Assembly (NCBI GenBank): GCA_977017575.1
Contig: CDRNVI010000030.1
Location: 558,001-622,000 of the forward strand
Length of the DNA: 64,000 nucleotides
Direction: 5' to 3'
Source of the DNA: Paramoeba atlantica
Taxonomy: Eukaryota; Protista; Discosea
Numbering within the stretch: position 1 is the stretch's first letter; each line of letters begins with the position of its first letter. Below, one piece after another: positions 2,047-44,800 of the stretch. The notes under the pieces are model-generated. The model made no database searches. It was not told the DNA's origin and worked only from the letters and a program-made list of their open reading frames with translations. The position numbers and the translations under genes were made by a program.

Positions 2047-2208
2047 TAAGACCATCGTTTTTTGTAAGACCATCGTTTTTTGTAAGACCATCGTTTTTTA
2101 TAAGACCATCGTTTTTTGTAAGACCATCGTTTTTTGTAAGACCATCGTTTTTTGTAAGACCATCGTTTTTTGTAAGACCATCGTTTTTTGTAAGACCATC
2201 GTTTTTTG
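2047..2208 (+). repeat. 9 tandem copies of 18-mer TAAGACCATCGTTTTTTG at the LINE-A1 5' end
   Basis: Nine whole units, one with a G>A change, start immediately after the left TSD. Confidence 0.97.
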
Positions 2209-2226
2209 TAATCTAATTATAAAAAC

Positions 2227-6813: not shown

Positions 6814-6860
6814 CCGATGCAAATCGGTCTTATAGGATAGGATAGGATAGGATAGGATAG

Positions 6861-7690: not shown

Positions 7691-7868
7691 TACACACTGT
7701 ACCACTCGGACCTGCACATTATTTTTCTCTCTATATAAATACAAAATGTAAACCGTGTTTTTGGTGGCCAGCTGGCCACTTTTTTCAAGAAAAAAATTTG
7801 GAAAAAAAAATCGTTCCGAATTTATTTTTTTCGCGATTTTGAGCATATAATTTTTTTTGTTCAAAAAT

Positions 7869-12737: not shown

Positions 12738-12763
12738 TCCGTTTTCTTGTCCCGCTTGAACTC

Positions 12764-15700: not shown

Positions 15701-17128
15701 TAGCTTCCACGAAACATGAAATATCGCAAATGATCGAAGCTACGGCAAATGAGGCAAAACCAGCTAATCTGAGGATTGCCGTGGGGAAAACCAAGACTGC
15801 GTGGATGGCCTTTGGGAAAGTTCCGGGGGGGACGCGAGAACTTCGAGCAGGATCGCTTGGCAAGATTCCTCTTGTGGATTCCTACCGGCATCTTGGTCAT
15901 CTCCAAGATGCTACAGCATCATCCCCCATCAAGGACAGGCTAAGGATCACATGGGCAGCATTTCGTAAACTCAGTGGCATTTGGGCTTCTCCTCTGAGTG
16001 CTGCCACGAAAATACGCCTGTTTGACTGCTTGATCTACCCTATTTTAACGTTTGGTGCAGCCTGTCTTTCTCTTTCTAACAAAATGCTTCGAAAAACGGA
16101 GGTTGAGGTAAATATGATGAGGAGATTCGCTTGTAACTCAGCAAAGCTTGACGATTTCGGACACTGCTACCCATTAGAGTCCTTGTATTGTGGTACGCCT
16201 CGATTTTCGACCGTGCATCGTGTTGCCCGTGCAAAAATCGTTGGCCACATGCTCAGGCACTCCTCTACGTTTCGCGAGCTCGTTCAATGGAATAGCACGG
16301 AAAAAACAAGAAATATTTCTCCTAGCGAAGCAAGTTTTAATGATCTAGGGGTCACTCTGGAGCAGGCGCTTGTTTACTCGCAGGATCGGATACACTGGCA
16401 AAAGCTATGCGATGAGCTCAGGCAGAAACTTGAACCACTTGCGATGTATGAGGTATTAAGGTCTCCAAGGTGGAAAACTAAACACACTCAAGCGGTCAAA
16501 AGCAAAAGCTCTTATGAGCTACAATTTGTGGAGGAAGGCTCGGATCCGTTCCCCATGAGTGAGGGTGAGGTTCATATGTATATTGATGGCTCTGTTCGGC
16601 AGTTGCGGGGGTCCAAGGAACAAAGATCCGGTGCGGGAATAGTTCTGAGAATGAGTGGAACAGAAGACAAATACTATTCCATAGCATTGGATGCTGGCTC
16701 AGCTGAGAGAGCTGAGGTTGAATCGCTGAGGGAAGCGCTGGAAAGGATACCTAATGAGGCTCAAACAGTTGTCATACACACCGATTCGTTCTATGTATGG
16801 AATTTCTTCCATCATACTCGTCTACGACGGCGAATCATTGGGTATAACAATCTACCGAATGGGGGTATCCTTGAGAAATTGGATCGGGAAATTCGAACGC
16901 TCCAATCGATGGATAAAAGGTGTTACGTGTGCAAAGTGAAATCCCACAACGGGAACATTTACAATGAGAAGGCAGACACCTTGGCGCTTGCAGGGTCGAG
17001 AAAAATAGTCCCAGCCTCAGAAATAAAGAGGAAGAAATAAATAAAGAGGAGAAAGACTGCGACAAGTGCCTCAGAAGCTCAAAGGGTTAGCTCAGAAACC
17101 GTTCAAACCATGAATCGTCCTCGGAAAC
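12764..17128 (+). mobile_element. LINE-A2: frameshifted at ~13205, 3'-truncated duplicate of LINE-A3
   Basis: Same left flank (TTGAACTC in LINE-C) and same stop-creating duplication near the RNase H end as A3. ORFs 12794-13318 and 13315-17040. Confidence 0.93.
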
Positions 17129-17145
17129 AGAGGTTCCGTTTTCTT

Positions 17146-21297: not shown

Positions 21298-21552
21298 AAT
21301 AAACTTATTCCTTCACAAAAAAGGATAAAGAGGCTTGATCCCTATAAAATTACTTGCCACGAGGTAATGCCCCCAGCGACAGCGGCTCTACGCCCTATCG
21401 AAGGGCCCTCCCGTCGGGCCCTTCAAAAATAAAGGACACAGAAGCTTGAGGGCGGTAGGGGCAAATATTTGACGAAAATCTGTTTTTTTTGAACTTGTTC
21501 ACAATCAATTTTCAAACGTTTTTAGGTCATTTTCGTATTCATACGGCCATTT

Positions 21553-24428: not shown

Positions 24429-24798
24429 GCGAAATGCCGCCCAGGTTAGTCTTAAACGATCCTTCAATGGCGAAGAAACACCTGAATCTTGAAGATTTCC
24501 CAGAGGAGGCTTGAGACACATCCTACACGATGAAACGGGGTGGACGCCCGTCCTGGTAGCTACGGTTGGGTAGCCGTGCTCGGGCCGCAAGGCGTCGAGT
24601 GCCGTCTGGGAAGGGGGTAGAAAGACAATGAAGGTCGGTGACCTGAGACTCTACCCTAACGGTTGGCGCTGCAGAGCCCTCCGTGTCTTCTTCTTCTTCT
24701 TCTTCTTCTTCTTCTATAGATATCTGGGAAATCTTCAAGATTCAGGTGTTTCTTCGCCATTGAAGGATCGTTTAAGACTAACCTGGGCGGCATTTCGC
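24429..24798. repeat. 76-bp inverted repeat of LINE-B sequence around a 218-bp spacer ending in (TTC)n
   Basis: 24429-24504 is the reverse complement of 24723-24798. The whole structure recurs at ~47270-47635. Confidence 0.88.
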
Positions 24799-27700
24799 AA
24801 GCTGCGGGGTATTTGGGATTCACCTCTTAGCGTATCCACCAAATTGCGGCTGTTTGGCTGCCTTGTTTACCCTATCATGACGTTTGGGGCGGCATCACTT
24901 TCAGTTTCCAACAAACTGCTTCGTCAAACAGAGGTTGATCTTAATATGATGCGAAGGTTCTGTTGCAATTGCGCGAAACTCGATGAGTTTGGACACTGTT
25001 ATACACTTGAATCGCTTTATCGCGGCACACCTCGGTTTTCTACCGTGCATCAGGTTAGTCGTGCAAAAATTGTGGGCCACATTCTGAGGCATTCGACTGC
25101 CTTTCGAGACCTCATACAGTGGAAATCCAGGGAGCAAAGAAGCTCTTGTTTACTCTAAGGATCGCGATCACTGGAGAAAACTGTGTGAGAATTTAAAAGC
25201 CACACTGGAGCCTCCTCCGGACTACGAGAGAATAAGTTCCCCCAGATGGAAAAGTCGCCATACCCAAGCCTTACAACAAGACACGCTTTATGATCCACAA
25301 TTCGTCGAAGAAGGCTCAGACCTCTTTCTCGTCAAAGATTCGGACTTTGCGCGTGACCAACGAAAACAGAGCTGGTGCAGGACTTGTCGTGCGACGAAAA
25401 TGGGTGAATAATCAAAATTTTTCCGAAGAGGAAGAAGACAACGAGCGCTAATACCTCTGAAACCATAAACTCGCTACAAACACGGAAGATTATTCGCCCA
25501 AGAACTAATGTTGCAAAAAATTCTTCTAAACGCAACGAAACACATACTGCAAGTGATCTTGTGCCTAAAAATGGCAGCTCCCGTTCTGTAGAGCCCAGAG
25601 AGGAATCGTCTGCTGAAATTTCCACTTCATCCCTGAGTAATCAAGATATCGGTAAAGAAAACAGTTGTCAGGGTTCAAGAGAATTTGACAAAGTTGGGAA
25701 CATTAAGAAAAAGGAGTCCCCTAAGAGAATGAAGCCGTCACGAGTTTTGAAACAGTAGTAAAGGGGGGGGGCGGATATATATTACGCTTGCAGATATATA
25801 TTACTTTTAAAATATTACTTGAAATTACTTTTTCACCTTTTATATTCAAAAATGGGCCATTTTCGCGGGCATACCACGGCAGAGGCGTTCGGACTTCGCA
25901 CCCCCAACTGCCTGTGAAGGGCCCTCCCTTGAAGGAGGGTGGCAACTTCCCAAAGGAGGTACAACCTCCTGAGGGAGCCAGCGGCAAGCCGGGGCTTCCC
26001 GGCACCCTTCATTCACTCAGAAACACATTTGGCGCCCTGCGATCGTCACCTCCGTTTGTCAGGTAAGAAAATGTTGATTTCACGTGGATCAAAGCATCGA
26101 AACTGCTCTAGAGCACCCAAAGTAGTAAGCGCCCAAAGTAGTAAGCGAGTATTCCCGGTGTCGTCAGGGGCGTTCAATCGCCCACAAGAACGTCTCGCCA
26201 CGCTGCCTTATTGCACTGTCGACCGAAATGTTGGCCTTCTGGGTGATCTACCCATGGGAAATGTTTCGATAGAGTGAATTATTAGTATGCCATGTTCCTA
26301 AAGAAATATGGTGGAACAAGTTAACCCAGGATAAAGTGGACGAGGGAGATACTAAAGGCACATTTTGCAAACTACCACAAAACTGGAACGGTATCCCCCG
26401 GTTTGTTAAGCATTCTGATGTGACCCAAGAATTTAACGTGAGATACTGTTCCAGTTTTGTGGTAGTTTGCCAAATGTGCCTTCAGTATCTCCCTCGTCCA
26501 CTTTATCCTGGGTTGCACAGCCATCGAAACATGCTCCCTAGGACCTCTTACAGATTCCCACGCGAGGAAGTCGTCGTCGCCGCGGCAAAAAGACAGAAGG
26601 CTGTCTTTTTGCCTTGCGCCTCCTCCTTCCTCTAAGGCCTTGCGTGTTACGCACTTCCAGGTAAATTTTGGACTTTGTAGGTGCATTACCATGGCAGACT
26701 GAAGAAATATCGAATGAAATCAAAGCGCATACAGGTGTATCAGGCCCCAAACTCTCAAAAAACGGTCTAGGAGTTGATTTGGGAAAAATATATTTTTTGA
26801 CTTTCACCCATAATTTTTCAGTTTTTCAAAATTTCAAAAATTGCTATGATCACCCTGGTGGGGAGGGGGGGGGGGCAGGGGGTACCCATCGGAATTGTTG
26901 AAAAACTAGTGATCTTGTCACTCAATTCGATTCATACGTCTTTGTAAACATTTCTTTCGAAAACTCACCTGAAACGATACCGGGCACGAAATCGGGCCAC
27001 AAATCGGGCCACAAATCGGGCACGGCGAATTAATCCACGGCAGCAAGGGAGTAGTATCTCCCTCAATAAACTTATTCCTTCACAAAAAAGGATAAAGAGG
27101 CTTGATCCCTATAAAATTACTTGCCACGAGGTAATGCCCCCAGCGACAGCGGCTCTACGCCCTATCGAAGGGCCCTCCCGTCGGGCCCTTCAAAAATAAA
27201 GGACACAGAAGCTTGAGGGCGGTAGGGGCAAATATTTGACGAAAATCTGTTTTTTTTGAACTTGTTCACAATCAATTTTCAAACGTTTTTAGGTCATTTT
27301 CGTATTCATACGGCCATTTCCAATCCAATCCAAATCCAATCCAGAATACCGACAAAGTCGGCTAAAACACTTAGCACTTTCACACTAAACATTTCCATCT
27401 CTATCATCAGCACTAGAGCTCATCAACACTAGAGCACACAAACCGCATAAAGTAATGGAATATAAAACTTCCTCAAGGCATATTCTAGCACACGTACGGA
27501 GATACACAACAAGCACTCACACTTACTTTGGTGTCCACCTTCCACCGCCAGTTCTCGTAACTTTCTGGCGAATAACAACTTTTTCCTCTGCCTCACGTTT
27601 AGACGCGGATGAGGCTTTCACTGCACGCTGACTTTTTGCGTTTCGTTTTGCAAACTGCTGAGCAGTGGTTTGCGAATTTGAGGACTTTCTTCTCTTTACG

Positions 27701-28344
27701 TCAGGTTCGCTTACTTTCTTTCTAGATGCAGACAATGCGAGCTAGTCTGCTGCCTCGTTCCAAGGATTTCCCGAGTGAGATTTAACTTTCACATATTTGT
27801 ACCCCTTGACCCTTCAACGCGCGTAATTTATGGTCCATTTGATCCATCAAGTCTCCATTTGCAATTCCGTTGTAGCCTACAACGCGAAAACGTGATCTTA
27901 AACTGTGAAAATATTGTCAAACGTAACAAGAATCAGTATGAAAAACGCAAGAAAGTGATACTTCTGGAAATTTCGAAATAGCCTCACGAAATGCTAATAA
28001 TTCGGCCCTCTCACTTGTTCCCACCTCCAACGGAATAGAATAGTAATCAGGGTCACCCCTGATTTTCAAGAAAACAACACCAGCACCGCTACGCACCGTT
28101 AGTGTTCCGCGCAAAACTCTCACTGAACCACCCGGAATGTATCAACATCCGAAATGTATAGATTTAAGCTTGGGGAATGGCACACTAGATTCTTCAATAA
28201 ATTGTAGCTCTTTATAAATCTTGTTCTTGATAGCTGTGGCTTTCAATGCTTTCCATTTTTTTGTAGTAGCACGCTCGTAGTCAACCGCTGGCTCAAGTGA
28301 AAGTTTTAGCTTTTCGGTGAGACGAAACCGATGCCATAAACCAA
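24718..28344. repeat. Segmental unit copy 2, left part (LINE-B fragment, foldback, LINE-C 3' end)
   Basis: Near-identical to 18962-22577 at offset ~5767, with small indels. Confidence 0.9.
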
Positions 28345-31300
28345 TGCCTCTTCTAAAGTTATACCCAAGTCTGAAATACATGCTTCGCTTGGAGAAGGAC
28401 GTCTCGAATTAGATTTATTTCTCCATTGCACCAGGTCTCGATAGTTCGGAGAATGTCTCAGCATGTGTCCGGCAAGTTTGGCTCTCTGAACTTTGTGAAT
28501 AGTGGAAAATCGTGATGTATTTACTTAGAGAGAGTCTGTAGGATAAGTTTTTAAGACCATCGTTTTTTGTAAGACCATCGTTTTTTGTAAGACCATCGTT
28601 TTTTGTAAGACCATCGTTTTTTGTAAGACCATCGTTTTTTGTAAGACCATCGTTTTTTGTAAGACCATCGTTTTTTGTAAGACCATCGTTTTTTGTAAGA
28701 CCATCGTTTTTTGTAAGACCATCGTTTTTTGTAAGACCATCGTTTTTTGTAAGACCATCGTTTTTTGTAAGACCATCGTTTTTTGTAAGACCATAGTTTT
28801 TTGTAAGACCATCGTTTTTGCTGCCTCTTCTAAAGTTATACCCAAGTCTGAAATACATGCTTCGCTTGGAGAAGGACGTCTCGAATTAGATTTATTTCTC
28901 CATTGCACCAGGTCTCGATAGTTCGGAGAATGTCTCAGCATGTGTCCGGCAAGTTTGGCTCTCTGAACTTTGTGAATAGTGGAAAATCGTGATGTATTTA
29001 CTTAGAGAGAGTCTGTAGGATAAGTTTTTAAGACCATCGTTTTTTGTAAGACCATCGTTTTTTGTAAGACCATCGCTTTTTGTAAGACCATCGTTTTTTG
29101 TAAGACCATCGTTTTTTGTAAGACCATTGTTTTTTGTAAGACCATCGTTTTTTGTAAGACCATCGTTTTTTGTAAGACCATCGTTTTTTGTAAGACCATC
29201 GTTTTTTGTAAGACCATCGTTTTTTGTAAGACCATCGTTTTTTGTAAGACCATCGTTTTTTGTAAGACCATCGTTTTTTGTAAGACCATCGTTCTTTGTA
29301 AGACCATCGTTTTTTGTAAGACCATCGTTTTTTGTAAGACCATCGTTTTTTGTAAGACCATCGTTTTTTGTAAGACCATCGTTTTTTGTAAGACCATCGT
29401 TTTTTGTAAGACCATCGTTTTTTGTAAGACCATCGTTTTTTGTAAGACCATCGTTTTTTGTAAGACCATCGTTTTTTGTAAGACCATCGTTTTTTGTAAG
29501 ACCATCGTTTTTTGTAAGACCATCGTTTTTTGTAAGACCATCGTTTTTTGTAAGACCATCGTTTTTTGTAAGACCATCGTTTTTGCTGCCTCTTCTAAAG
29601 TTATACCCAAGTCTGAAATACATGCTTCGCTTGGAGAAGGACGTCTCGAATTAGATTTATTTCTCCATTGCACCAGGTCTCGATAGTTCGGAGAATGTCT
29701 CAGCATGTGTCCGGCAAGTTTGGCTCTCTGAACTTTGTGAATAGCGGAAAATCGTGATGTATTTACTTAGAGAGAGTCTGTAGGATAAGTTTTTAAGACC
29801 ATCGTTTTTTGTAAGACCATCGTTTTTTGTAAGACCATCGTTTTTTGTAAGACCATCGTTTTTTGTAAGACCATCGTTTTTTGTAAGACCATCGTTTTTT
29901 GTAAGACCATCGTGTTTGCTGCCTCTTCTAAAGTTATACCCAAGTCTGAAATACATGCTTCGCTTGGAGAAGGACGTCTCGAATTAGATTTATTTCTCCA
30001 TTGCACCAGGTCTCGATAGTTCGGAGAATGTCTCAGCATGTGTCCGGCAAGTTTGGCTCTCTGAACTTTGTGAATAGTGGAAAATCGTGATGTATTTACT
30101 TAGAGAGAGTCTGTAGGATAAGTTTTTAAGACCATCGTTTTTTGTAAGACCATCGTTTTTTGTAAGACCATCGTTTTTTGTAAGACCATCGTTTTTTGTA
30201 AGACCATCGTTTTTTGTAAGACCATCGTTTTTTGTAAGACCATCGTTTTTTGTAAGACCATCGTTTTTTGTAAGACCATTGTTTTTTGTAAGACCATCGT
30301 TTTTTGTAAGACCATCGTTTTTTGTAAGACCATCGTTTTTTGTAAGACCATTGTTTTTTGTAAGACCATCGTTTTTTGTAAGACCATCGTTTTTTGTAAG
30401 ACCATCGTTTTTTGTAAGACCATCGTTTTTTGTAAGACCATCGTTTTTTGTAAGACCATCGTTTTTTGTAAGACCATCGTTTTTTGTAAGACCATCGTTT
30501 TTTGTAAGACCATCGTTTTTTGTAAGACCATCGTTTTTTGTAAGACCATCGTTTTTTGTAAGACCATCGTTTTTTGTAAGACCATCGTTTTTTGTAAGAC
30601 CATCGTTTTTTGTAAGACCATCGTTTTTTGTAAGACCATCGTTTTTTGTAAGACCATCGTTTTTTGTAAGACCATCGTTTTTTGTAAGACCATCGTTTTT
30701 TGTAAGACCATCGTTTTTTGTAAGACCATCGTTTTTGCTGCCTCTTCTAAAGTTATACCCAAGTCTGAAATACATGCTTCGCTTGGAGAAGGACGTCTCG
30801 AATTAGATTTATTTCTCCATTGCACCAGGTCTCGATAGTTCGGAGAATGTCTCAGCATGTGTCCGGCAAGTTTGGCTCTCTGAACTTTGTGAATAGCGGA
30901 AAATCGTGATGTATTTACTTAGAGAGAGTCTGTAGGATAAGTTTTTAAGACCATCGTTTTTTGTAAGACCATCGTTTTTTGTAAGACCATCGTTTTTTGT
31001 AAGACCATCGTTTTTTGTAAGACCATCGTTTTTTGTAAGACCATCGTTTTTTGTAAGACCATCGTTTTTTGTAAGACCATCGTTTTTGCTGCCTCTTCTA
31101 AAGTTATACCCAAGTCTGAAATACATGCTTCGCTTGGAGAAGGACGTCTCGAATTAGATTTATTTCTCCATTGCACCAGGTCTCGATAGTTCGGAGAATG
31201 TCTCAGCATGTGTCCGGCAAGTTTGGCTCTCTGAACTTTGTGAATAGTGGAAAATCGTGATGTATTTACTTAGAGAGAGTCTGTAGGATAAGTTTTTAAG

Positions 31301-34300
31301 ACCATCGTTTTTTGTAAGACCATCGTTTTTTGTAAGACCATCGTTTTTTGTAAGACCATCGTTTTTTGTAAGACCATCGTTTTTTGTAAGACCATCGTTT
31401 TTTGTAAGACCATCGTTTTTTGTAAGACCATCGTTTTTTGTAAGACCATCGTTTTTTGTAAGACCATCGTTTTTTGTAAGACCATCGTTTTTTGTAAGAC
31501 CATCGTTTTTTGTAAGACCATCGTTTTTTGTAAGACCATCGTTTTTTGTAAGACCATCGTTTTTTGTAAGACCATCGTTTTTTGTAAGACCATCGTTTTT
31601 TGTAAGACCATCGTTTTTTGTAAGACCATCGTTTTTTGTAAGACCATCGTTTTTTGTAAGACCATCGTTTTTTGTAAGACCATCGTTTTTTGTAAGACCA
31701 TCGTTTTTTGTAAGACCATCGTTTTTTGTAAGACCATCGTTTTTGCTGCCTCTTCTAAAGTTATACCCAAGTCTGAAATACATGCTTCGCTTGGAGAAGG
31801 ACGTCTCGAATTAGATTTATTTCTCCATTGCACCAGGTCTCGATAGTTCGGAGAATGTCTCAGCATGTGTCCGGCAAGTTTGGCTCTCTGAACTTTGTGA
31901 ATAGCGGAAAATCGTGATGTATTTACTTAGAGAGAGTCTGTAGGATAAGTTTTTAAGACCATCGTTTTTTGTAAGACCATCGTTTTTTGTAAGACCATCG
32001 TTTTTTGTAAGACCATCGTTTTTTGTAAGACCATCGTTTTTTGTAAGACCATCGTTTTTTGTAAGACCATCGTTTTTTGTAAGACCATCGTTTTTTGTAA
32101 GACCATCGTTTTTGCTGCCTCTTCTAAAGTTATACCCAAGTCTGAAATACATGCTTCGCTTGGAGAAGGACGTCTCGAATTAGATTTATTTCTCCATTGC
32201 ACCAGGTCTCGATAGTTCGGAGAATGTCTCAGCATGTGTCCGGCAAGTTTGGCTCTCTGAACTTTGTGAATAGTGGAAAATCGTGATGTATTTACTTAGA
32301 GAGAGTCTGTAGGATAAGTTTTTAAGACCATCGTTTTTTGTAAGACCATCGTTTTTTGTAAGACCATCGTTTTTTGTAAGACCATCGTTTTTTGTAAGAC
32401 CATCGTTTTTTGTAAGACCATCGTTTTTTGTAAGACCATCGTTTTTTGTAAGACCATCGTTTTTTGTAAGACCATCGTTTTTTGTAAGACCATCGTTTTT
32501 TGTAAGACCATCGTTTTTTGTAAGACCATCGTTTTTTGTAAGACCATCGTTTTTTGTAAGACCATCGTTTTTTGTAAGACCATCGTTTTTTGTAAGACCA
32601 TCGTTTTTTGTAAGACCATCGTTTTTTGTAAGACCATCGTTTTTTGTAAGACCATCGTTTTTTGTAAGACCATCGTTTTTTGTAAGACCATCGTTTTTTG
32701 TAAGACCATCGTTTTTTGTAAGACCATCGTTTTTTGTAAGACCATCGTTTTTTGTAAGACCATCGTTTTTTGTAAGACCATCGTTTTTTGTAAGACCATC
32801 GTTTTTTGTAAGACCATCGTTTTTGCTGCCTCTTCTAAAGTTATACCCAAGTCTGAAATACATGCTTCGCTTGGAGAAGGACGTCTCGAATTAGATTTAT
32901 TTCTCCATTGCACCAGGTCTCGATAGTTCGGAGAATGTCTCAGCATGTGTCCGGCAAGTTTGGCTCTCTGAACTTTGTGAATAGCGGAAAATCGTGATGT
33001 ATTTACTTAGAGAGAGTCTGTAGGATAAGTTTTTAAGACCATCGTTTTTTGTAAGACCATCGTTTTTTGTAAGACCATCGTTTTTTGTAAGACCATCGTT
33101 TTTTGTAAGACCATCGTTTTTTGTAAGACCATCGTTTTTTGTAAGACCATTGTTTTTTGTAAGACCATCGTTTTTTGTAAGACCATCGTTTTTTGTAAGA
33201 CCATCGTTTTTTGTAAGACCATCGTTTTTTGTAAGACCATCGTTTTTTGTAAGACCATCGTTTTTTGTAAGACCATCGTTTTTTGTAAGACCATCGTTTT
33301 TTGTAAGACCATCGTTTTTTGTAAGACCATCGTTTTTTGTAAGACCATCGTTTTTTGTAAGACCATCGTTTTTTGTAAGACCATCGTTTTTTGTAAGACC
33401 ATCGTTTTTTGTAAGACCATCGTTTTTTGTAAGACCATCGTTTTTTGTAAGACCATCGTTTTTTGTAAGACCATCGTTTTTTGTAAGACCATCGTTTTTT
33501 GTAAGACCATCGTTTTTTGTAAGACCATCGTTTTTTGTAAGACCATCGTTTTTTGTAAGACCATCGTTTTTTGTAAGACCATCGTTTTTTGTAAGACCAT
33601 CGTTTTTTGTAAGACCATCGTTTTTTGTAAGACCATCGTTTTTTGTAAGACCATCGTTTTTTGTAAGACCATCGTTTTTTGTAAGACCATCGTTTTTTGT
33701 AAGACCATCGTTTTTTGTAAGACCATCGTTTTTTGTAAGACCATCGTTTTTTGTAAGACCATCGTTTTTTGTAAGACCATCGTTTTTTGTAAGACCATCG
33801 TTTTTTGTAAGACCATCGTTTTTTGTAAGACCATCGTTTCTTGTAAGACCATCGTTTTTTGTAAGACCATCGTTTTTTGTAAGACCATCGTTTTTTGTAA
33901 GACCATCGTTTTTGCTGCCTCTTCTAAAGTTATACCCAAGTCTGAAATACATGCTTCGCTTGGAGAAGGACGTCTCGAATTAGATTTATTTCTCCATTGC
34001 ACCAGGTCTCGATAGTTCGGAGAATGTCTCAGCATGTGTCCGGCAAGTTTGGCTCTCTGAACTTTGTGAATAGCGGAAAATCGTGATGTATTTACTTAGA
34101 GAGAGTCTGTAGGATAAGTTTTTAAGACCATCGTTTTTTGTAAGACCATCGTTTTTTGTAAGACCATCGTTTTTTGTAAGACCATCGTTTTTTGTAAGAC
34201 CATCGTTTTTTGTAAGACCATCGTTTTTTGTAAGACCATCGTTTTTTGTAAGACCATCGTTTTTTGTAAGACCATCGTTTTTTGTAAGACCATCGTTTTT

Positions 34301-37300
34301 GCTGCCTCTTCTAAAGTTATACCCAAGTCTGAAATACATGCTTCGCTTGGAGAAGGACGTCTCGAATTAGATTTATTTCTCCATTGCACCAGGTCTCGAT
34401 AGTTCGGAGAATGTCTCAGCATGTGTCCGGCAAGTTTGGCTCTCTGAACTTTGTGAATAGTGGAAAATCGTGATGTATTTACTTAGAGAGAGTCTGTAGG
34501 ATAAGTTTTTAAGACCATCGTTTTTTGTAAGACCATCGTTTTTTGTAAGACCATCGTTTTTTGTAAGACCATCGTTTTTTGTAAGACCATCGTTTTTTGT
34601 AAGACCATCGTTTTTTGTAAGACCATCGTTTCTTGTAAGACCATCGTTTTTTGTAAGACCATCGTTTTTTGTAAGACCATCGTTTTTTGTAAGACCATCG
34701 TTTTTTGTAAGACCATCGTTTTTTGTAAGACCATCGTTTTTTGTAAGACCATCGTTTTTTGTAAGACCATCGTTTTTTGTAAGACCATCGTTTTTTGTAA
34801 GACCATCGTTTTTTGTAAGACCATCGTTTTTTGTAAGACCATCGTTTTTTGTAAGACCATCGTTTTTTGTAAGACCATCGTTTTTTGTAAGACCATCGTT
34901 TTTTGTAAGACCATCGTTTTTTGTAAGACCATCGTTTTTTGTAAGACCATCGTTTTTTGTAAGACCATCGTTTTTTGTAAGACCATCGTTTTTTGTAAGA
35001 CCATCGTTTTTTGTAAGACCATCGTTTTTTGTAAGACCATCGTTTTTTGTAAGACCATCGTTTTTTGTAAGACCATCGTTTTTTGTAAGACCATCGTTTT
35101 TTGTAAGACCATCGTTTTTTGTAAGACCATCGTTTTTTGTAAGACCATCGTTTTTTGTAAGACCATCGTTTTTTGTAAGACCATCGTTTTTGCTGCCTCT
35201 TCTAAAGTTATACCCAAGTCTGAAATACATGCTTCGCTTGGAGAAGGACGTCTCGAATTAGATTTATTTCTCCATTGCACCAGGTCTCGATAGTTCGGAG
35301 AATGTCTCAGCATGTGTCCGGCAAGTTTGGCTCTCTGAACTTTGTGAATAGCGGAAAATCGTGATGTATTTACTTAGAGAGAGTCTGTAGGATAAGTTTT
35401 TAAGACCATCGTTTTTTGTAAGACCATCGTTTTTTGTAAGACCATCGTTTTTTGTAAGACCATCGTTTTTTGTAAGACCATCGTTTTTTGTAAGACCATC
35501 GTTTTTTGTAAGACCATCGTTTTTTGTAAGACCATCGTTTTTTGTAAGACCATTGTTTTTTGTAAGACGATCGTTTTTTGTAAGACCATCGTTTTTTGTA
35601 AGACCATCGTTTTTTGTAAGACCATCGTTTTTTGTAAGACCATCGTTTTTTGTAAGACCATCGTTTTTTGTAAGACCATCGTTTTTTGTAAGACCATCGT
35701 TTTTTGTAAGACCATCGTTTTTTGTAAGACCATCGTTTTTTGTAAGACCATCGTTTTTTGTAAGACCATCGTTTTTTGTAAGACCATCGTTTTTTGTAAG
35801 ACCATCGTTTTTTGTAAGACCATCGTTTTTTGTAAGACCATCGTTTTTTGTAAGACCATCGTTTTTTGTAAGACCATCGTTTTTTGTAAGACCATCGTTT
35901 TTTGTAAGACCATCGTTTTTTGTAAGACCATCGTTTTTGCTGCCTCTTCTAAAGTTATACCCAAGTCTGAAATACATGCTTCGCTTGGAGAAGGACGTCT
36001 CGAATTAGATTTATTTCTCCATTGCACCAGGTCTCGATAGTTCGGAGAATGTCTCAGCATGTGTCCGGCAAGTTTGGCTCTCTGAACTTTGTGAATAGTG
36101 GAAAATCGTGATGTATTTACTTAGAGAGAGTCTGTAGGATAAGTTTTTAAGACCATCGTTTTTTGTAAGACCATCGTTTTTTGTAAGACCATCGTTTTTT
36201 GTAAGACCATCGTTTTTTGTAAGACCATCGTTTTTTGTAAGACCATCGTTTTTTGTAAGACCATCGTTTTTTGTAAGACCATCGTTTTTTGTAAGACCAT
36301 CGTTTTTTGTAAGACCATCGTTTTTTGTAAGACCATCGTTTTTTGTAAGACCATCGTTTTTTGTAAGACCATCGTTTTTTGTAAGACCATCGTTTTTTGT
36401 AAGACCATCGTTTTTTGTAAGACCATCGTTTTTTGTAAGACCATCGTTTTTGCTGCCTCTTCTAAAGTTATCCCCAAGTCTGAAATACATGCTTCGCTTG
36501 GAGAAGGACGTCTCGAATTAGATTTATTTCTCCATTGCACCAGGTCTCGATAGTTCGGAGAATGTCTCAGCATGTGTCCGGCAAGTTTGGCTCTCTGAAC
36601 TTTGTGAATAGCGGAAAATCGTGATGTATTTACTTAGAGAGAGTCTGTAGGATAAGTTTTTAAGACCATCGTTTTTTGTAAGACCATCGTTTTTTGTAAG
36701 ACCATCGTTTTTTGTAAGACCATCGTTTTTTGTAAGACCATCGTTTTTTGTAAGACCATCGTTTTTTGTAAGACCATCGTTTTTTGTAAGACCATCGTTT
36801 TTTGTAAGACCATCGTTTTTTGTAAGACCATCGTTTTTGCTGCCTCTTCTAAAGTTATACCCAAGTCTGAAATACATGCTTCGCTTGGAGAAGGACGTCT
36901 CGAATTAGATTTATTTCTCCATTGCACCAGGTCTCGATAGTTCGGAGAATGTCTCAGCATGTGTCCGGCAAGTTTGGCTCTCTGAACTTTGTGAATAGTG
37001 GAAAATCGTGATGTATTTACTTAGAGAGAGTCTGTAGGATAAGTTTTTAAGACCATCGTTTTTTGTAAGACCATCGTTTTTTGTAAGACCATCGTTTTTT
37101 GTAAGACCATCGTTTTTTGTAAGACCATCGTTTTTTGTAAGACCATCGTTTTTTGTAAGACCATCGTTTTTTGTAAGACCATCGTTTTTTGTAAGACCAT
37201 CGTTTTTTGTAAGACCATCGTTTTTTGTAAGACCGTCGTTTTTTGTAAGACCATCGTTTTTTGTAAGACCATCGTTTTTTGTAAGACCATCGTTTTTTGT

Positions 37301-40300
37301 AAGACCATCGTTTTTTGTAAGACCATCGTTTTTTGCAAGACCATCGTTTTTTGTAAGACCATCGTTTTTTGTAAGACCATCGTTTTTTGTAAGACCATCG
37401 TTTTTTGTAAGACCATCGTTTTTTGTAAGACCATCGTTTTTGCTGCCTCTTCTAAAGTTATACCCAAGTCTGAAATACATGCTTCGCTTGGAGAAGGACG
37501 TCTCGAATTAGATTTATTTCTCCATTGCACCAGGTCTCGATAGTTCGGAGAATGTCTCAGCATGTGTCCGGCAAGTTTGGTTCTCTGAACTTTGTGAATA
37601 GCGGAAAATCGTGATGTATTTACTTAGAGAGAGTCTGTAGGATAAGTTTTTAAGACCATCGTTTTTTGTAAGACCATCGTTTTTTGTAAGACCATCGTTT
37701 TTTGTAAGACCATCGTTTTTTGTAAGACCATCGTTTTTTGTAAGACCATCGTTTTTTGTAAGACCATCGTTTTTTGTAAGACCATCGTTTTTTGTAAGAC
37801 CATCGTTTTTTGTAAGACCATCGTTTTTTGTAAGACCATCGTTTTTTGTAAGACCATCGTTTTTTGTAAGACCATCGTTTTTTGCAAGACCATCGTTTTT
37901 TGTAAGACCATCGTTTTTTGTAAGACCATCGTTTTTTGTAAGACCATCGTTTTTTGTAAGACCATCGTTTTTTGTAAGACCATCGTTTTTTGTAAGACCA
38001 TCGTTTTTTGTAAGACCATCGTTTTTTGTAAGACCATCGTTTTTTGTAAGACCATCGTTTTTTGTAAGACCATCGTTTTTTGTAAGACCATCGTTTTTGC
38101 TGCCTCTTCTAAAGTTATACCCAAGTCTGAAATACATGCTTCGCTTGGAGAAGGACGTCTCGAATTAGATTTATTTCTCCATTGCACCAGGTCTCGATAG
38201 TTCGGAGAATGTCTCAGCATGTGTCCGGCAAGTTTGGCTCTCTGAACTTTGTGAATAGTGGAAAATCGTGATGTATTTACTTAGAGAGAGTCTGTAGGAT
38301 AAGTTTTTAAGACCATCGTTTTTTGTAAGACCATCGTTTTTTGTAAGACCATCGTTTTTTGTAAGACCATCGTTTTTTGTAAGACCATCGTTTTTTGTAA
38401 GACCATCGTTTTTTGTAAGACCATCGTTTTTTGTAAGACCATCGTTTTTTGTAAGACCATCGTTTTTTGTAAGACCATCGTTTTTTGTAAGACCATCGTT
38501 TTTTGTAAGACCATCGTTTTTTGTAAGACCATCGTTTTTTGTAAGACCATCGTTTTTTGTAAGACCATCGTTTTTGCTGCCTCTTCTAAAGTTATACCCA
38601 AGTCTGAAATACATGCTTCGCTTGGAGAAGGACGTCTCGAATTAGATTTATTTCTCCATTGCACCAGCTCTCGATAGTTCGGAGAATGTCTCAGCATGTG
38701 TCCGGCAAGTTTGGCTCTCTGAACTTTGTGAATAGTGGAAAATCGTGATGTATTTACTTAGAGAGAGTCTGTAGGATAAGTTTTTAAGACCATCGTTTTT
38801 TGTAAGACCATCGTTTTTTGTAAGACCATCGTTTTTTGTAAGACCATCGTTTTTTGTAAGACCATCGTTTTTTGTAAGACCATCGTTTTTTGTAAGACCA
38901 TCGTTTTTTGTAAGACCATCGTTTTTTGTAAGACCATCGTTTTTTGTAAGACCATCGTTTTTTGTAAGACCATCGTTTTTTGTAAGACCATCGTTTTTTG
39001 TAAGACCATCGTTTTTTGTAAGACCATCGTTTTTTGTAAGACCATCGTTTTTTGCAAGACCATCGTTTTTTGTAAGACCATCGTTTTTTGTAAGACCATC
39101 GTTTTTTGTAAGACCATCGTTTTTTGTAAGACCATCGTTTTTTGTAAGACCATCGTTTTTGCTGCCTCTTCTAAAGTTATACCCAAGTCTGAAATACATG
39201 CTTCGCTTGGAGAAGGACGTCTCGAATTAGATTTATTTCTCCATTGCACCAGGTCTCGATAGTTCGGAGAATGTCTCAGCATGTGTCCGGCAAGTTTGGT
39301 TCTCTGAACTTTGTGAATAGCGGAAAATCGTGATGTATTTACTTAGAGAGAGTCTGTAGGATAAGTTTTTAAGACCATCGTTTTTTGTAAGACCATCGTT
39401 TTTTGTAAGACCATCGTTTTTTGTAAGACCATCGTTTTTTGTAAGACCATCGTTTTTTGTAAGACCATCGTTTTTTGTAAGACCATCGTTTTTTGTAAGA
39501 CCATCGTTTTTTGTAAGACCATCGTTTTTTGTAAGACCATCGTTTTTTGTAAGACCATCGTTTTTTGTAAGACCATCGTTTTTTGTAAGACCATCGTTTT
39601 TTGTAAGACCATCGTTTTTTGTAAGACCATCGTTTTTTGTAAGACCATCGTTTTTTGTAAGACCATCGTTTTTTGTAAGACCATCGTTTTTTGCAAGACC
39701 ATCGTTTTTTGTAAGACTATCGTTTTTTGTAAGACCATCGTTTTTTGTAAGACCATCGTTTTTTGTAAGACCATCGTTTTTTGTAAGACCATCGTTTTTT
39801 GTAAGACCATCGTTTTTTGTAAGACCATCGTTTTTTGTAAGACCATCGTTTTTTGTAAGACCATCGTTTTTTGTAAGACCATCGTTTTTTGTAAGACCAT
39901 CGTTTTTTGTAAGACCATCGTTTTTGCTGCCTCTTCTAAAGTTATACCCAAGTCTGAAATACATGCTTCGCTTGGAGAAGGACGTCTCGAATTAGATTTA
40001 TTTCCCCATTGCACCAGGTCTCGATAGTTCGGAGAATGTCTCAGCATGTGTCCGGCAAGTTTGGCTCTCTGAACTTTGTGAATAGTGGAAAATCGTGATG
40101 TATTTACTTAGAGAGAGTCTGTAGGATAAGTTTTTAAGACCATCGTTTTTTGTAAGACCATCGTTTTTTGTAAGACCATCGTTTTTTGTAAGACCATCGT
40201 TTTTTGTAAGACCATCGTTTTTTGTAAGACCATCGTTTTTTGTAAGACCATCGTTTTTTGTAAGACCATCGTTTTTTGTAAGACCATCGTTTTTTGTAAG

Positions 40301-40714
40301 ACCATCGTTTTTTGTAAGACCATCGTTTTTTGTAAGACCATCGTTTTTTGTAAGACCATCGTTTTTTGTAAGACCATCGTTTTTTGTAAGACCATCGTTT
40401 TTTGTAAGACCATCGTTTTTTGTAAGACCATCGTTTTTTGTAAGACCATCGTTTTTTGTAAGACCATCGTTTTTTGTAAGACCATCGTTTTTTGTAAGAC
40501 CATCGTTTTTGCTGCCTCTTCTAAAGTTATACCCAAGTCTGAAATACATGCTTCGCTTGGAGAAGGACGTCTCGAATTAGATTTATTTCTCCATTGCACC
40601 AGCTCTCGATAGTTCGGAGAATGTCTCAGCATGTGTCCGGCAAGTTTGGCTCTCTGAACTTTGTGAATAGTGGAAAATCGTGATGTATTTACTTAGAGAG
40701 AGTCTGTAGGATAA
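28345..40714. repeat. 12.4-kb higher-order array: 21x 202-bp LINE-C segment alternating with 20 blocks of (TAAGACCATCGTTTTTTG)n
   Basis: Every period = 207+18n with n = 15,31,7,34,8,25,9,28,49,10,38,30,17,10,22,25,15,21,31,21 (sum 446). LINE-C continues collinearly on both sides. Confidence 0.97.
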
Positions 40715-41254
40715 CAAAAACCATACTCGTCCAATTTGTTGCACTGAGATGCAATTCTTCTCATCGTATTAATTTCGTCATCAATCGAACACAACATTTT
40801 TTGAGAAATGTGCAATGCGCCTGAACCGAAGTTCAGAATAGGGTATATAAGCACGTCGTATAGTCTGAGTTTAATATGAGAGCTTAAAGATGAAATCCAT
40901 ATTCCTCGCATGCTGGCAAATGAGGTACAAGCAAGTTTCAAACGATCTTTGTTTGTAGATGATGTTTCATTGTCTTGAAGATGCCCTAGATGTCGATACG
41001 AATCTACTCTAGGTGCCGTTTCCAGTTCTTTTGTCTGGAGATTCTTATTTGAGCCGGCAACCTTACCGAAAGAGATAAGGTTTGTGTATGCGTTTTTTGT
41101 AACACCTACAGCTATCTTTAGGTTCGCCAAGGAAGCATCCTGTGACGTTTCGTCAATCATTTCCTGGAGACCTTCCTTTGTATCACTGAACAATGCAATG
41201 TCATCTGCAAGATCAATATCAGAAATTCGTTTTTCCTGTAGGTTCCGTTTTCTT
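40715..41254 (-). pseudogene. LINE-C RT segment continuing upstream of the array
   Basis: ORF 40693-41274 is nearly identical to 22758-23339. Confidence 0.9.
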
Positions 41255-41870
41255 TTCCAAAAAATCCAAGTCATTCCGGATTGCTCCGGATGGTCACTGG
41301 CAAGCCAGACCCTTCACAGACAGATTTGGAAGTTCCGAGGCCGACGTCCTCTACCAGTTTCCGCTTGTCCAAGGCGGCACCAACGTGCTGTTGCCAACAC
41401 GATGCGTCGACGAACGCAATATTCCTGGCGGCCTCACTCTAAGAGGCTGGGTGGAGAACCGACTAGGCCCAGTACTCGGAGGACCGTCCCAGACCCTCCC
41501 CTCAGGGAACCAGCTCCCTTACCCGGCTCACACCTCTTGGGTAAGCCGTGTTGGCGTACAATTCGTCGACGCAGCGTGTTGGCAACAGCACGTTGGTGCC
41601 GCCTTGGGCAAGCGGAAACTGGTAGAGGACGTCGGTCTCGGAACTTCCAAATCTGTCTGTGAAGGGTCTGGCTTGCCAGTGACCATCCGGAGCAATCCGG
41701 AATGATTTGGATTTTTTTTTTGGAGTACTGGGCCTAGTCGGTTCTCTACCCAGCCTCTTAGAGTGAGGCCGCCGGGAATATTGCGATGAGCGGGTTTAAA
41801 CGCTCCGTCTGAGCACCATGTGCTTCAAACCTTGAATTCTTGCCACTCCGCCACCTCCGCTTGGTGGCGC
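41255..41870. mobile_element. SINE-in-SINE inverted composite with a ~139-bp central deletion
   Basis: Same outer TSD and structure as 11983-12737; novel junction at 41415/41416. Confidence 0.88.
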
Positions 41871-41896
41871 TCCGTTTTCTTGTCCCGCTTGAACTC

Positions 41897-44800
41897 CATC
41901 GTTTTTTGTAATCTAATTATAAAAACATGGCGGATGCTTCCGGCACGTGTAAGGGGACAGAGGTTTTTGAAACCCTTACACGGACCAAGCGTGGTCGGGG
42001 GGTCATCTTTCGTTCACCCGAGCGAGAGGGGCCTGCTAAACTCCTCCAGAGAGCGGTGCGGGCGCTCTGTAAGTTTGTCCGCGTTGGGGCTCATCTTCGC
42101 GTCGCGTGGAGACACGACAACTGCTGCGACACTTTGTTTGTTTGGGAGGGCGAGGTCGTGTGTGAGGGGCCGGCTTATCTGAAAAGCGTAGGCTGGCATA
42201 CTCAGGGGGGATCCTCGGTAACTCGAGGTGAACCTTTGTCCGGTACATTTCGTGTTCGGTACGTGGCGAGGCCGCACACGACTCTCCCCTTTCCCCCCTT
42301 ACTGAATACAGGTGTCGTGCTCTGCGCGGTGCAGGTGAGTAACCCGGCAAAGGCGAAACGAAGGAGCTCCCGTCACCGCCCTCGGTCACACTGGGCGTCG
42401 CGTGGTACACACGCCCAACGAGATTCGGAGAACCTCAAAGGTTCCGCTGTGAAGGAGAACACCACCGTTGCAACGCTTAACGTTACGACGTTAAAACTCG
42501 AGGGGGAAGATGAATTCTCTCTTCGAAGATACACCCGTTTGAACGAGGTGCTTGCTTTCATGCAGGTAAGGGGGGTTGTTGTCATGTGCCTTCAGGAGAC
42601 CAGGTACAATTTCTCGAAGGAAGGACATGAGGATGGAATCCTCTACAGGCAGGTTGAAAACCTAGGGGAGAGGTTTCACCTGTATTTGCAGTCGGCCGCC
42701 GCACGCGATTCATATAATGGCGTGGCCATAGTGAGCCGGCATGCGTTTCGGAAGGTTTGGATGGTGAGCAACAGGGTGATGGGAGCTGTCTATCCCCTGG
42801 AGGAGGGGACCGGCACTTTGTTCAATGTCTATGCCCCAATACGGGACTCCTCAGAAGCCGTTCATGCGGCATTTCTGGGTGACTTGGACAAGGCGTGTCG
42901 TGAGGTCAAGGCTGAACGGAAACGAAGACCTTTATTGGTCATGGGGGATTTCAATGCACCGATAACGCTCGTGACGAATCCGAGCATGGATCCCCCAGCG
43001 GTCTCTCAGCTGAAAGGCCTCTTGTGCCCCATTGGCTGTAAGTCAGCACACACCCTCTGCCCGAGCAAGAGGAAATGGACATGTGAGCTGCCGGGCAGGA
43101 GGGCGGAGACAAAGGACCGTCGCAACGTAGGAACAGAGAAGGTGGGGCAGAAGGGGGAAGAAGGAAAGGTGGAAATGGGAAGGAAAGGATCAGAGCCAGA
43201 GGGGACGGATAACAACGGTATGGTGAAGAGGGGAAGGGAAGGAGAGGAAAATGGGGACAAGGCCTGCGAGTACATGCACGTAAAAGGGGAGGTCGGCAAA
43301 AAGGGAGGTAGCAAAAGGCGTGGGGACAACAAGGTGCGGAGACAGCTTGACCACATCATGGTCAGTGAGCGCTTTGCCTCCAGCATTAGGAGGCACAAAG
43401 TACTCAAGGCGCCAGTGCCTACAGTACACTGCGTCGTTATGGCGGATGTGAAAATCAAGTGGCGCTCTAAAGGTACAGGTGGGCAAAGCAAGGTACCCTG
43501 GCCAAGACTTGGAGATGAAGAGAAGAAGGCATCCTTCCAGCAAGCAGTGTGGGAAATGGCGAAGAAAGAGGAAGAGATCACATGGGAATACTTATCGGAA
43601 AATATGGTACACACAGCGCAAAGACTCTCAAAAAAGGACCGAACCCCAAAAACGACCAACGCTCCTACAGGGACAGAAAACACACCACCGGGTACAGAAA
43701 CACCGCGCATCTCAGGGTTTCGCGACTTATTTCTTCAGAGTCGAAAACCGGACCACTTCAAGGAAGTGCTAAAAGAGCACGGAGAAGAAATTGAGGCGCA
43801 GATTGGGCAGGAATGCGCCGAAATTGAAGCAGGTCTGCGGCGAAACCGTTCTAATCCGTGGCGTACGCTACGTAGAATTTGCGGTTTGTACAGGGAGACT
43901 CTTTGCATCGAGACCTCGTCGACAAGGGAAACTCTTAACATTGTTAAAGATTTCTTTGCTCGTATGGGGTCCGATGATCGCGGAGATAAAGATATAAAAT
44001 TTGACAAAGTAGTCAGCCCGAAAGTACCAATCAACGATGAAAGTTTCACTGTAGAAGAGCTCGAGGGCGGCATCAGTAGACTAGCGCGCAACAAGGCACA
44101 TGGAATAGACCAAATTCCGGAGCAGGCACTCAGAATGATCACAGAACATGCTGAGCTGAGAAAATCCTTATTACATATTATAAACGAGGTTCATCGAACA
44201 GGGGTTTCGCCTGCGTCCTGGAAAATTGTCCTTCAGGTGCCTATTCCAAAAAAAGGCGACCTGACACAAATAGCGAATTGGCGGCCAATCTGTCTCGTGA
44301 ACAGTGCGGTTAAATTGATGAATGCAATGATCCTGAAAAGAATCAGACCATCCATCGAGCCGCTCCTTCGCGACAGTCAATTTGGTTTTCGGCCAGAAAG
44401 GTCCACGGCAGGGGCGCAAATCATTTTGAATGATGCAAGAGTTCGTGCGACCAGGGGCAAGAAAGGCATTGCAGTGGCATTCATGGACTTCGCAAAAGCA
44501 TTTCCCTCGGTATCGTTTCATGCCATCCGTGCTGCATTGAATGCCTTTCATGTCGGACCCGCGCTTACTAGGATGGTAATGTCCTTGTACTCGAATTTAA
44601 AAGGAATAGTCCGCACACCATACGGAAATACGGATTCTTTTCCCATTGAAACAGGAATTCTTCAAGGGGACGTGCTTGCTCCTTATCTCTTTGTGCTTGT
44701 AATCGATAGGATTCTCAACAAAGCACTCGATAACAAGCCGCTCGGGATTCTTCTAAGGAGCAGCGGGACGAAAAGCAGGGGAATTCAAGAATTTAGACTA

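Follow-up and report, generated by a model that had tools for sequence, protein, structure and literature searches.

A young higher-order satellite in a Paramoeba atlantica assembly built from the 5' leader repeat of one LINE and a 202-bp piece of another

Introduction

The 5' ends of mouse L1 elements carry tandem promoter monomers of about 200 nt. In dinoflagellates, relic spliced leaders are found stacked at the 5' ends of retroposed genes, the spliced leader being the same for all genes of an organism. Mammalian L1 elements also produce 3'-truncated, endonuclease-independent insertions at DNA breaks, usually without target duplications. The satellites derived from transposons, as described by McGurk and Barbash (2018, PMC5932611), start from a tandem structure of elements and expand by unequal exchange, with an expansion of roughly 16 copies in the case of hobo. 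The centromeres of Trypanosoma brucei are reported to be AT-rich arrays of ~147-bp repeats (PMC3292466).

Here we describe an array from an assembly of Paramoeba atlantica (Discosea) and compare it with these systems. A preliminary description, made from the DNA letters alone, had drawn attention to it. The window is a stretch of 64,000 nucleotides (assembly GCA_977017575.1, contig CDRNVI010000030.1, positions 558,001 to 622,000 of the forward strand), and all coordinates below refer to it. The genome is probably that of a kinetoplastid, and its G+C content agrees with a Perkinsela-like organism.

Results

The array lies in a transposon-rich region, spans 12.4 kb (28345..40714, plus strand), and has a G+C content of 36%, against ~47% in its surroundings. 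It consists of 21 copies of a 202-bp piece of one LINE (LINE-C) alternating with 20 blocks of an 18-mer that belongs to another (LINE-A). The 18-mer unit is TAAGACCATCGTTTTTTG. A register-locked parse of the window identified 20 blocks of 7-49 units each, 446 units in total, between positions 28552 and 40512, the count being that of one assembly. From left to right, blocks 1-10 have 15, 31, 7, 34, 8, 25, 9, 28, 49, and 10 units, and blocks 11-20 have 38, 30, 17, 10, 22, 25, 15, 21, 31, and 21 units. Most of the array's 18-mers are exact (409 of 446); with the 8 found in the element LINE-A1 they make up the 417 exact copies in the window, and a scan of the whole window for the minus strand returned 0. 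A block of n units is composed of n-1 complete 18-mers, followed by TAAGACCATCGTTTTTG and then by a C. For instance, block 1 (28552..28821, plus strand) has 14 complete units, a 17-nt last unit with five T, and the C, and the other 19 blocks end in the same manner.

The 202-bp pieces, from the first (28345..28546, minus strand), which is joined on its left to LINE-C, to the last (40513..40714, minus strand), vary at only five positions. Each of pieces 1-20 is directly followed by GTTTT (28547..28551, plus strand, for the first), which is the same in 20 of the 20 units, as is the C on the right. This "linker" can equally be read as filler or as a partial 18-mer unit. Piece 21 is directly followed by CAAAAACC, the normal continuation of LINE-C. 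In other words, the array is one unit repeated head-to-tail 20 times at high identity, with a variable period of 333-1089 bp and a sub-period of 18 bp. The numbers of blocks and units and the invariant linkers agree exactly with the preliminary description, and the spacers, which it had called identical, are near-identical. Five of the six frames of the 18-mer unit are open, so that the array gives spurious ORFs of 200-350 residues, a matter of concern for genome annotation. The translated 18-mer array was also used as a protein query for other arrays called as genes and gave no match, for which low-complexity filtering is probably responsible.

The 202-bp piece encodes, on the minus strand, a stretch of LINE-C ORF2 that matches LINE-A residues 1126-1192, between the reverse transcriptase (RT) and RNase H domains (tblastn). 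A single LINE-C copy (copy 2) is split by the array, with one half on each side. The half on its left (24700..28344, minus strand), which is the 3' side of this minus-strand element, is 99.1% identical to copy 1, and the half on its right (40715..41415, minus strand), the 5' side, matches LINE-A residues from ~949. The uninterrupted copy 1 has the 202 bp once (22578..22779, minus strand) and gives an empty-site reference: its 202 bp are identical to the consensus of the 21 array pieces, and the flanks are the same on both sides. The array is thus internal, and the window runs 23 kb beyond it, at odds with a telomeric position. A tblastn search with the LINE-A polyprotein over 28345-40714 recovered only the LINE-C piece in each spacer, which bears out the earlier observation that the array has no LINE-A body.

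The 18-mer is the 5' leader repeat of LINE-A at five independent insertions, where it is present in 0.7-19 units: 9 in A1, 0.7 in A3, and 18.7, ~16, and 3.6 at loci L004, L005, and L009, respectively. The full-length LINE-A1 (2047..6859, plus strand) has nine 18-mers, an 18-nt unique leader beginning with TAAT, ORF1, ORF2 (RT, RNase H), and an (ATAGG)n tail, within a 10-bp target duplication (2037-2046 and 6860-6869). LINE-A3 (41897..46571, plus strand) starts with the last 13 nt of one unit and has a fused ORF of 1415 aa (APE, RT, RNase H), with TGAACT as target duplication; it lies 1.2 kb to the right of the array and is unconnected to it. Since the 5' end and upstream flank of LINE-A2 (12763..17129, plus strand) are the same as those of A3, it belongs to a segmental duplication of 4.85 kb and does not count as an independent insertion. 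The target duplications of LINE-A measure 10 (A1), 6-7 (A3), and 10 bp (L005), and (ATAGG)n tails are present at A1, A3, L004, L005, L006, and L009. At L005, extra copies of the target are interleaved with short 18-mer pieces ahead of the 5' junction of LINE-A, and one such short piece, upstream of the element and without a body, also ends in ...TTTTTTG.

LINE-A is not alone in having such a leader. A sister LINE, 77% identical, has a related 18-mer of its own in 87 copies, and four LINE families have four different leader units. The 5' ends of several LINE families in this genome are made up of family-specific units of 18-19 nt with a shared grammar. We found no description of 18-mer arrays like these in the literature searched. 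The LINE-A ORF2 retrieved only generic APE-RT-RNase H LINE clusters in a Protein Atlas search, an Rfam scan of the window gave no family at the gathering score, and the 2A peptide (NPGP) typical of L1Tc is absent from the window.

Independent data on the array come from a second public assembly, which reproduces the last five blocks over 3.2 kb with the same variants and ends inside the array; exact look-ups of three array-spanning ORFs gave no record of the left half in this assembly. Four public runs have contigs with the left junction, and run X3 has the inner one; these are Logan contigs, which use words of 31 letters and give no phasing across 202 bp. Depth in the public runs is 70 to 2000 times higher for 18-mer words than for the 202-bp piece, whereas a ratio of ~20 would be expected if all 18-mers were in the array. 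Most copies of the 18-mer are therefore outside the array.

The variants of the 202-bp pieces and of the 18-mers record how the array grew. In a zone with a periodicity of two units (29587..33028, plus strand), pieces 3-9 alternate between a derived C and an ancestral T at position 159, T being taken as ancestral because it is the base of the empty site. In the first three pairs, short blocks (7, 8, and 9 units) come after the C pieces and long ones (34, 25, and 28 units) after the T pieces. In a second zone, with a periodicity of three units (36841..40714, plus strand), private variants are common to pieces three units apart: T138 and C159 to pieces 16 and 19, and C91 to pieces 18 and 21. The variant unit CAAGACC... 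occurs at matching offsets in blocks 15 and 18 and in blocks 16 and 19, and the unit variants b and c cluster and likewise recur at matching offsets. The shared variants mark duplicated segments of two and three units, and therefore growth by unequal exchange from a single founder. Amplification thus took place at the DNA level from one founder unit, and the invariant junctions, the variants shared two and three units apart, and the alternation of long and short blocks uphold the proposal of a single founding event followed by recombination. Out-of-register exchange, whether between sister chromatids or between homologues, then used both the 202-bp direct repeats and the tracts of 18-mers as substrates. 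It duplicated segments of two and three units until 20 blocks were reached, while block length drifted between 7 and 49 units.

The founder unit reads [202-bp LINE-C piece]-GTTTT-[LINE-A 18-mer array]-C-[same 202-bp piece]. It is an array-only insert, antisense in LINE-C ORF2, flanked by a direct target duplication of 202 bp. This length is 20 times that usual for LINE-A and agrees with the earlier remark that the duplication is outsized. On the 3' side there is neither an (ATAGG)n tail nor a LINE-A body: every block ends in ...TTTTTG and C, followed by the 202-bp piece. The top strand was broken at GGATAA/CAAAAAC, which resembles the sites of A3 (TGAACT/CAAAAG) and L005 (GTGAC/ACAAAAC). CAAAA has a frequency of ~0.003 per position, and the preference for it comes from 2 of the 3 genuine insertions whose target duplication could be read.

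Past the 5-nt filler, the first base of the array proper is at unit position 0, and all of the seven independent 5' ends fall at unit positions 0-7 of 18. In an arc test, the chance that seven points lie within some arc of 8/18 of the circle is ~0.05, so the clustering of 5'-end phase is only marginal. The preliminary description had stressed that every block shares the register of the LINE-A 5' array. The left end of the founder is indeed in the phase of LINE-A 5' ends, but the 20 blocks come from one founder and their common register is therefore one observation and not twenty. No second independent body-less array was found among the loci reached. A boundary in run X2 (...CATCGT followed by AGCCTGG...) had the appearance of an arbitrary phase; a matching left boundary has a (TCT)n tail, and the array picks up there at the unit position that follows. 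The simpler reading is an 18-mer array into which another element was inserted, and for this reason the boundary was not counted against the phase.

Discussion

The array is very probably a real higher-order satellite derived from transposable elements, of a known kind, and the most fitting view of it is as a side product of a LINE family with 5' ends made of expandable 18-mers. We favour, with a probability of roughly 0.55, the reading that it is a young LINE-derived higher-order repeat whose founder was made by the LINE-A machinery acting on a template with 5' repeats only, and which then grew by unequal exchange. The array-only template was probably inserted by this machinery together with the 202-bp target duplication. 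The second strand would have been broken ahead of CAAAA, a site of LINE-A type, at a distance of 202 bp from the first break, whereas 6-10 bp is usual. The preliminary description had raised the possibility that free 18-nt RNA was reverse-transcribed at a nick; the evidence says only that the template would have started near the normal 5' end of the LINE-A RNA and stopped at a unit boundary. A more specific version is that the body-less blocks arose by reverse transcription of an RNA made solely of leader repeats, a candidate being the 5' fragment released by trans-splicing of a LINE-A precursor at ...TTTTTTG. TG is reported to serve as acceptor at 26% of the sites in Perkinsela (PMC5601477), and the body-less piece of L005 that ends in the same letters would be another trace of the process. 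We consider this version doubtful; if it were true, the 18-mer module would be retro-mobile in its own right and able to seed new satellites.

The main rival to insertion by the LINE-A machinery keeps the same amplification and places the founder at the DNA level, which we find possible if distinctly less probable. A break or a stalled fork in LINE-C would have led to a template switch into an 18-mer array, such as one heading a LINE-A, with a return to LINE-C 202 bp upstream, by microhomology-mediated break-induced replication or polymerase-theta-type repair, the product being a tandem duplication whose joint holds a templated insert. Both junctions do resemble repair joints, the left one with a 5-nt filler that is itself 18-mer-like, and the right one with a 1-nt filler, a TGC/TGC stutter, and a last unit one T short. 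Moreover, 18-mer arrays are abundant as donors, a LINE tail is missing, and the duplication is far longer than the LINE-A range. However, such repair predicts neither an insert running from unit position 0 to a unit boundary nor a target break before CAAAA as in genuine LINE-A insertions, albeit on small numbers in each case. It is improbable that a full-length LINE-A was inserted with a 202-bp target duplication and lost its body later. The direct repeats do recombine in the array, and the extra target copies and short 18-mer pieces before the 5' junction of L005 would fit a multi-unit first insertion from which recombination between 202-bp repeats removed the unit with the body, as in the formation of solo LTRs. 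That first insertion is nevertheless unobserved, a simple deletion would have had to be precise and to span exactly from the last unit to the final base of the tail, and traces of leader, ORF, or tail are present at 0 of the 20 right junctions.

Two further explanations concern the array as a whole, and we hold both to be very unlikely. One takes it for a functional chromosomal element: a centromere of the T. brucei type, a telomere-like repeat, or an element related to trans-splicing. The array is AT-richer than its surroundings and sits within a nest of LINEs, and each unit has a T-run followed by TAAG, which resembles a splice acceptor. But it is non-terminal, just 12.4 kb long, and very young, and the 18-mer is nonspecific, with units that are family-specific LINE leader repeats. 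Nothing supports a centromeric or telomeric function, and there is no evidence of a cellular one. The suggestion of a nascent centromeric or telomere-like satellite thus finds no support, given the LINE-C sequence on both sides, the ordinary LINE-A copies headed by the same 18-mer, and the depth of its words in the public runs. The other explanation is an assembly artefact, in which a simpler locus was over-expanded or mis-joined. The break of the second assembly within the array and the inability of short-word contigs to resolve the structure speak for it; against it, the five blocks of this assembly and their variants agree with ours, the inner junction occurs in an independent run, and the unequal block lengths and nested private variants are beyond what any collapse or expansion error would give.

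The locus is a satellite caught at birth whose history is still readable, from the empty site and the founder junctions to the duplicated segments of two or three units and the drifting length of the inner minisatellite. To the known ways in which transposons give rise to satellites it adds a type of seed, a LINE fragment made of repeats only and enclosed by a long target duplication. If the array-only founder was RNA-derived, the leader module would be able to move without its element. The locus also points to a more interesting system behind it, that of LINE families with family-specific, expandable 5' units of 18-19 nt.

These units are comparable to the monomers of mouse L1: both are variable tandem units upstream of ORF1, family-specific, with a copy number that differs between insertions. 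The units of this genome, known here from sequence alone, are however 18-19 nt long, against ~200 nt, and reach 87 copies. Like the relic leader stacks of dinoflagellates, LINE-A has short tandem units at the 5' end of a retro-copied sequence. We rejected the 18-mer as a relic of a spliced leader, since the units differ between LINE families and leader patterns are absent. This holds, in the window and loci L001-L003, for the published leader of Perkinsela (primer in PMC5601477) and for three other leader patterns; no kinetoplastid, diplonemid, euglenid, or dinoflagellate pattern is present there. The founder of the array resembles the endonuclease-independent insertions of L1 in having no LINE 3' end or tail and in its atypical junctions, but differs from them by its 202-bp duplication and by one break at a LINE-A-type site.

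The centromeric arrays of T. brucei (PMC3292466) are likewise AT-richer tandem arrays among retroelements, a nonspecific feature, and the present genome is kinetoplastid-like. Their period is ~147 bp, in contrast to 333-1089 bp here, and they extend over tens of kb, compared with 12 kb for an array whose 18-mer also occurs elsewhere as the head of a LINE. The array is of a kind with the satellites derived from transposable elements (PMC5932611): in both cases, direct repeats related to transposition were expanded by unequal exchange, the unit is built from transposable elements, and our 20 units are similar in number to the ~16 copies of the hobo expansion. The seed, in contrast, is a body-less 5' repeat module between the copies of a 202-bp target duplication, where those satellites start from two whole adjacent elements. 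Unlike in the cases treated there, the unit of the array combines pieces of two LINEs that run in opposite directions and has a variable inner minisatellite, which results in two nested levels of repetition.

Anatomy of the composite array

A register-locked parse of the window identified 20 plus-strand blocks of TAAGACCATCGTTTTTTG that alternate with 21 copies of a 202-bp piece, the first at 28345-28546 and the last at 40513-40714. The blocks contain, in order, 15, 31, 7, 34, 8, 25, 9, 28, 49, 10, 38, 30, 17, 10, 22, 25, 15, 21, 31, and 21 units (446 in total), and the counts and coordinates of the preliminary description are thus correct. The terminal unit of each block has 17 nt (five T rather than six) and is followed by C. 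Identical spacers, the 202-bp piece plus GTTTT, separate the blocks, and the total variation among the 21 pieces amounts to five positions. Tandem Repeats Finder reports a single 18-bp array at 28548-40510, with a 477-bp period at its left end, and the G+C content of the region falls from about 47% to 36%. The 18-mer has five open frames out of six, and about 20 spurious ORFs of 200-350 residues consequently arise on the minus strand of the array (28892-40047); gene callers annotate such ORFs in the second assembly.

A self-comparison of the window revealed a second copy of the element surrounding the array, at 18949-23576. There, the 202 bp are present once (22578-22779), flanked as in the array by ...CATAAACCAA on one side and CAAAAACC... 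on the other. They match the consensus of the 21 pieces with no difference, so this copy serves as the empty site. When searched by tblastn with the LINE-A polyprotein, the element around the array was found to be a minus-strand LINE related to LINE-A (LINE-C), in which the 202 bp encode the equivalent of LINE-A residues 1126-1192, between the RT and RNase H, with about 58% identity. The same search found no LINE-A body inside the array.

Independent support for the array

Contig ctg3283l of the second assembly is 99.91% identical to 37450-51266 of the window. It reproduces the last five blocks (25, 15, 21, 31, and 21 units) with their variants, differs by two single bases in T runs, and terminates inside the array. 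We also compared the 7-unit block and its two spacers with the Logan contigs of four public sequencing runs (X1 to X4) labelled with the same species. All four contain the join of the 202-bp piece to the 18-mer via GTTTT. The inner join, where the 18-mer leads via C into the 202-bp piece, can arise only from a tandem arrangement and was present in X3. We rate the array as well resolved and probably real. Since Logan contigs are built from 31-letter words, which neither phase across 202 bp nor count blocks, the figure of 20 blocks comes from one assembly.

The word depth of the 18-mer is about 70 to 2000 times that of the 202-bp piece, far over the roughly 20-fold excess expected if all copies were in the array, so most unit copies lie outside it. 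In X1 and X3, this ratio (window 29790-29920) exceeds that of X2 and X4 about tenfold, and the contigs there measure about 60 nt and have Illumina adaptor immediately beside the 18-mers. The excess may reflect either enrichment or transcription. In one X2 contig (at window 29587-29823), the 202-bp piece, GTTTT, and 18-mers follow upstream sequence, ...GATCTGTAGCATAAACCAA, other than that of the window, reflecting a difference between strains, a separate LINE-C subfamily, or an artefact of short-word paths.

Growth from a single founder

Position 159 of the piece is T in the empty site and a derived C in ten pieces. The two strictly alternate along pieces 2-9, and in the first three pairs the short blocks (7, 8, and 9 units) are preceded by a C piece and the long ones (34, 25, and 28) by a T piece. 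Further along, pieces 16 and 19 share T138 and C159, pieces 18 and 21 share C91, and in the block pairs 15/18 and 16/19 the unit variant CAAGACC... lies at corresponding distances from the block ends. These shared variants are traces of two-unit and three-unit segment duplications, i.e., of unequal exchange with the 202-bp repeats setting the register, so that the invariant junctions and common register are inherited from one founder. Block length changes independently of these duplications. The shared variants support the earlier proposal of one founder and recombinational growth. The common register of 20 blocks counts as one observation and not as twenty.

Leader repeats of LINE-A and related families

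The 18-mer is the 5' module of LINE-A. LINE-A1 (2047-6859) consists of 9 units, an 18-nt unique leader starting with TAAT, ORF1, ORF2 (RT and RNase H), and an (ATAGG)n tail, with a 10-bp target duplication within an unrelated 59/67-bp satellite. This satellite, rich in CACGTG and CTGCAG motifs, is one array that the LINE-A1 insertion split into 1365-2045 and 6860-7695; an inverted array of it lies 42 kb away, at 49173-49691, within another LINE-C copy. The 5' end of LINE-A3 is 13 nt of the last unit alone, with target duplication TGAACT, and LINE-A2 is its segmental duplicate. The duplicated segments (12282-17129 and 41415-46263; 4.85 kb, 99.5% identity) include 480 bp of upstream flank containing a long inverted repeat.

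Further LINE-A copies were taken from a public metagenome assembly, evidently of the same organism (ENA ERZ24900291). Locus L004 has 18.7 units starting at ACCATCG and L009 has 3.6 starting at ATCG, both with no visible target duplication, and L005 has about 16 starting at (GAC)CATCG, with the 10-bp duplication ATTGGGTGAC. Just upstream of the full-length LINE-A of L005, two short 18-mer pieces of 12 and 8 nt without a LINE body (9620-9694) lie in adjacent units of a minisatellite at the target, which has a 33-bp period. Of these pieces, the first terminates in ...TTTTTTG, as does every block of the 12.4-kb array.

A sister LINE (77% ORF2 identity; locus L002, 7432-8999) has a related 18-mer of its own, TAAGACCACTTTTTGTTT, in 87 copies immediately before ORF1. 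This array lies within another LINE's endonuclease ORF and begins at ACC, just past the TAAG position. Two more LINE families have 19-mers. The four families share a 5' grammar (window 2047-2226; L002 3080-3200 and 7432-8999; L003 5686-5740): repeats of TAAG and 14-15 family-specific nt lead into TAAT or TAAC, with which the repeat frame runs on into unique sequence. In each unit a T-rich run precedes AG, resembling a splice acceptor. We rejected the idea that the units are relic spliced leaders, because they are family-specific. Other 18-bp tandem arrays, with GC-rich units of the CTCCGCCAC type, end short elements at 54611-54721 and 17513-17573. The leader repeats of 18-19 nt in the four LINE families are more unusual biology than the array itself.

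The founding event

On each side, the outermost piece continues into LINE-C without a break, and no array follows the last one. The founder was therefore necessarily of the form [202]-array-[202], formally an insert within a 202-bp target duplication. The array proper begins at unit position 0, and the seven readable independent 5' ends (A1, A3, L004, L005, L009, the L002 sister element, and one X2 junction) fall at unit positions 0-7 of 18. Seven random points would fall within some such arc with a probability of about 0.05, and this phase is only suggestive of a link to the LINE-A machinery. The top-strand break precedes CAAAAAC, much as it precedes CAAAAG in A3 and ACAAAAC in L005. CAAAA occurs in the window at about 0.003 per position, and the break site would tie the founder to the same machinery.

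The right end of the insert is a unit boundary. The founder is unlike an ordinary insertion in having neither an (ATAGG)n tail nor a body, and in its duplication, which is 20 times too long. Weighing these anomalies against the 5' phase and the break site, we favour an aberrant insertion, by LINE-A machinery, of a template that held only the array. Its chief rival is a repair-type template switch into another array and back, and a smaller share goes to a normal LINE-A insertion that subsequently lost its body. For the favoured aberrant insertion, the template might, speculatively, be a 5' fragment left by trans-splicing at the ...TTTTTTG boundary. The Perkinsela genome study (PMC5601477) reports a spliced leader on LINE mRNA and roughly equal use of TG and AG as acceptors.

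Host and comparison with known systems

The G+C content of the window and its APE-RT-RNase H LINEs match the published description of Perkinsela (47.1% G+C, ingi/L1Tc-like elements; PMC5601477). However, the published Perkinsela leader sequence and a 2A motif are both absent from the window. The genome is probably that of a Perkinsela-like kinetoplastid endosymbiont. It contains another transposon-derived tandem array, at locus L008 (6420-12649), where a 2334-bp unit with LINE reverse-transcriptase fragments is repeated exactly in tandem, in at least three copies that run to the contig end.

In composition and neighbourhood, the array is like the Trypanosoma brucei centromeric arrays (PMC3292466). 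The centromeric or telomere-like role raised in the preliminary description finds no support: this is a young, small array in an internal position, and ordinary LINE heads share its repeat. The closest known process is the origin of new satellites when tandem transposon structures undergo unequal exchange (PMC5932611). What differs in this case is that a repeat-only LINE fragment within a long target duplication forms the seed, and that the unit combines two LINEs in opposite orientations and holds a nested inner repeat of variable length.
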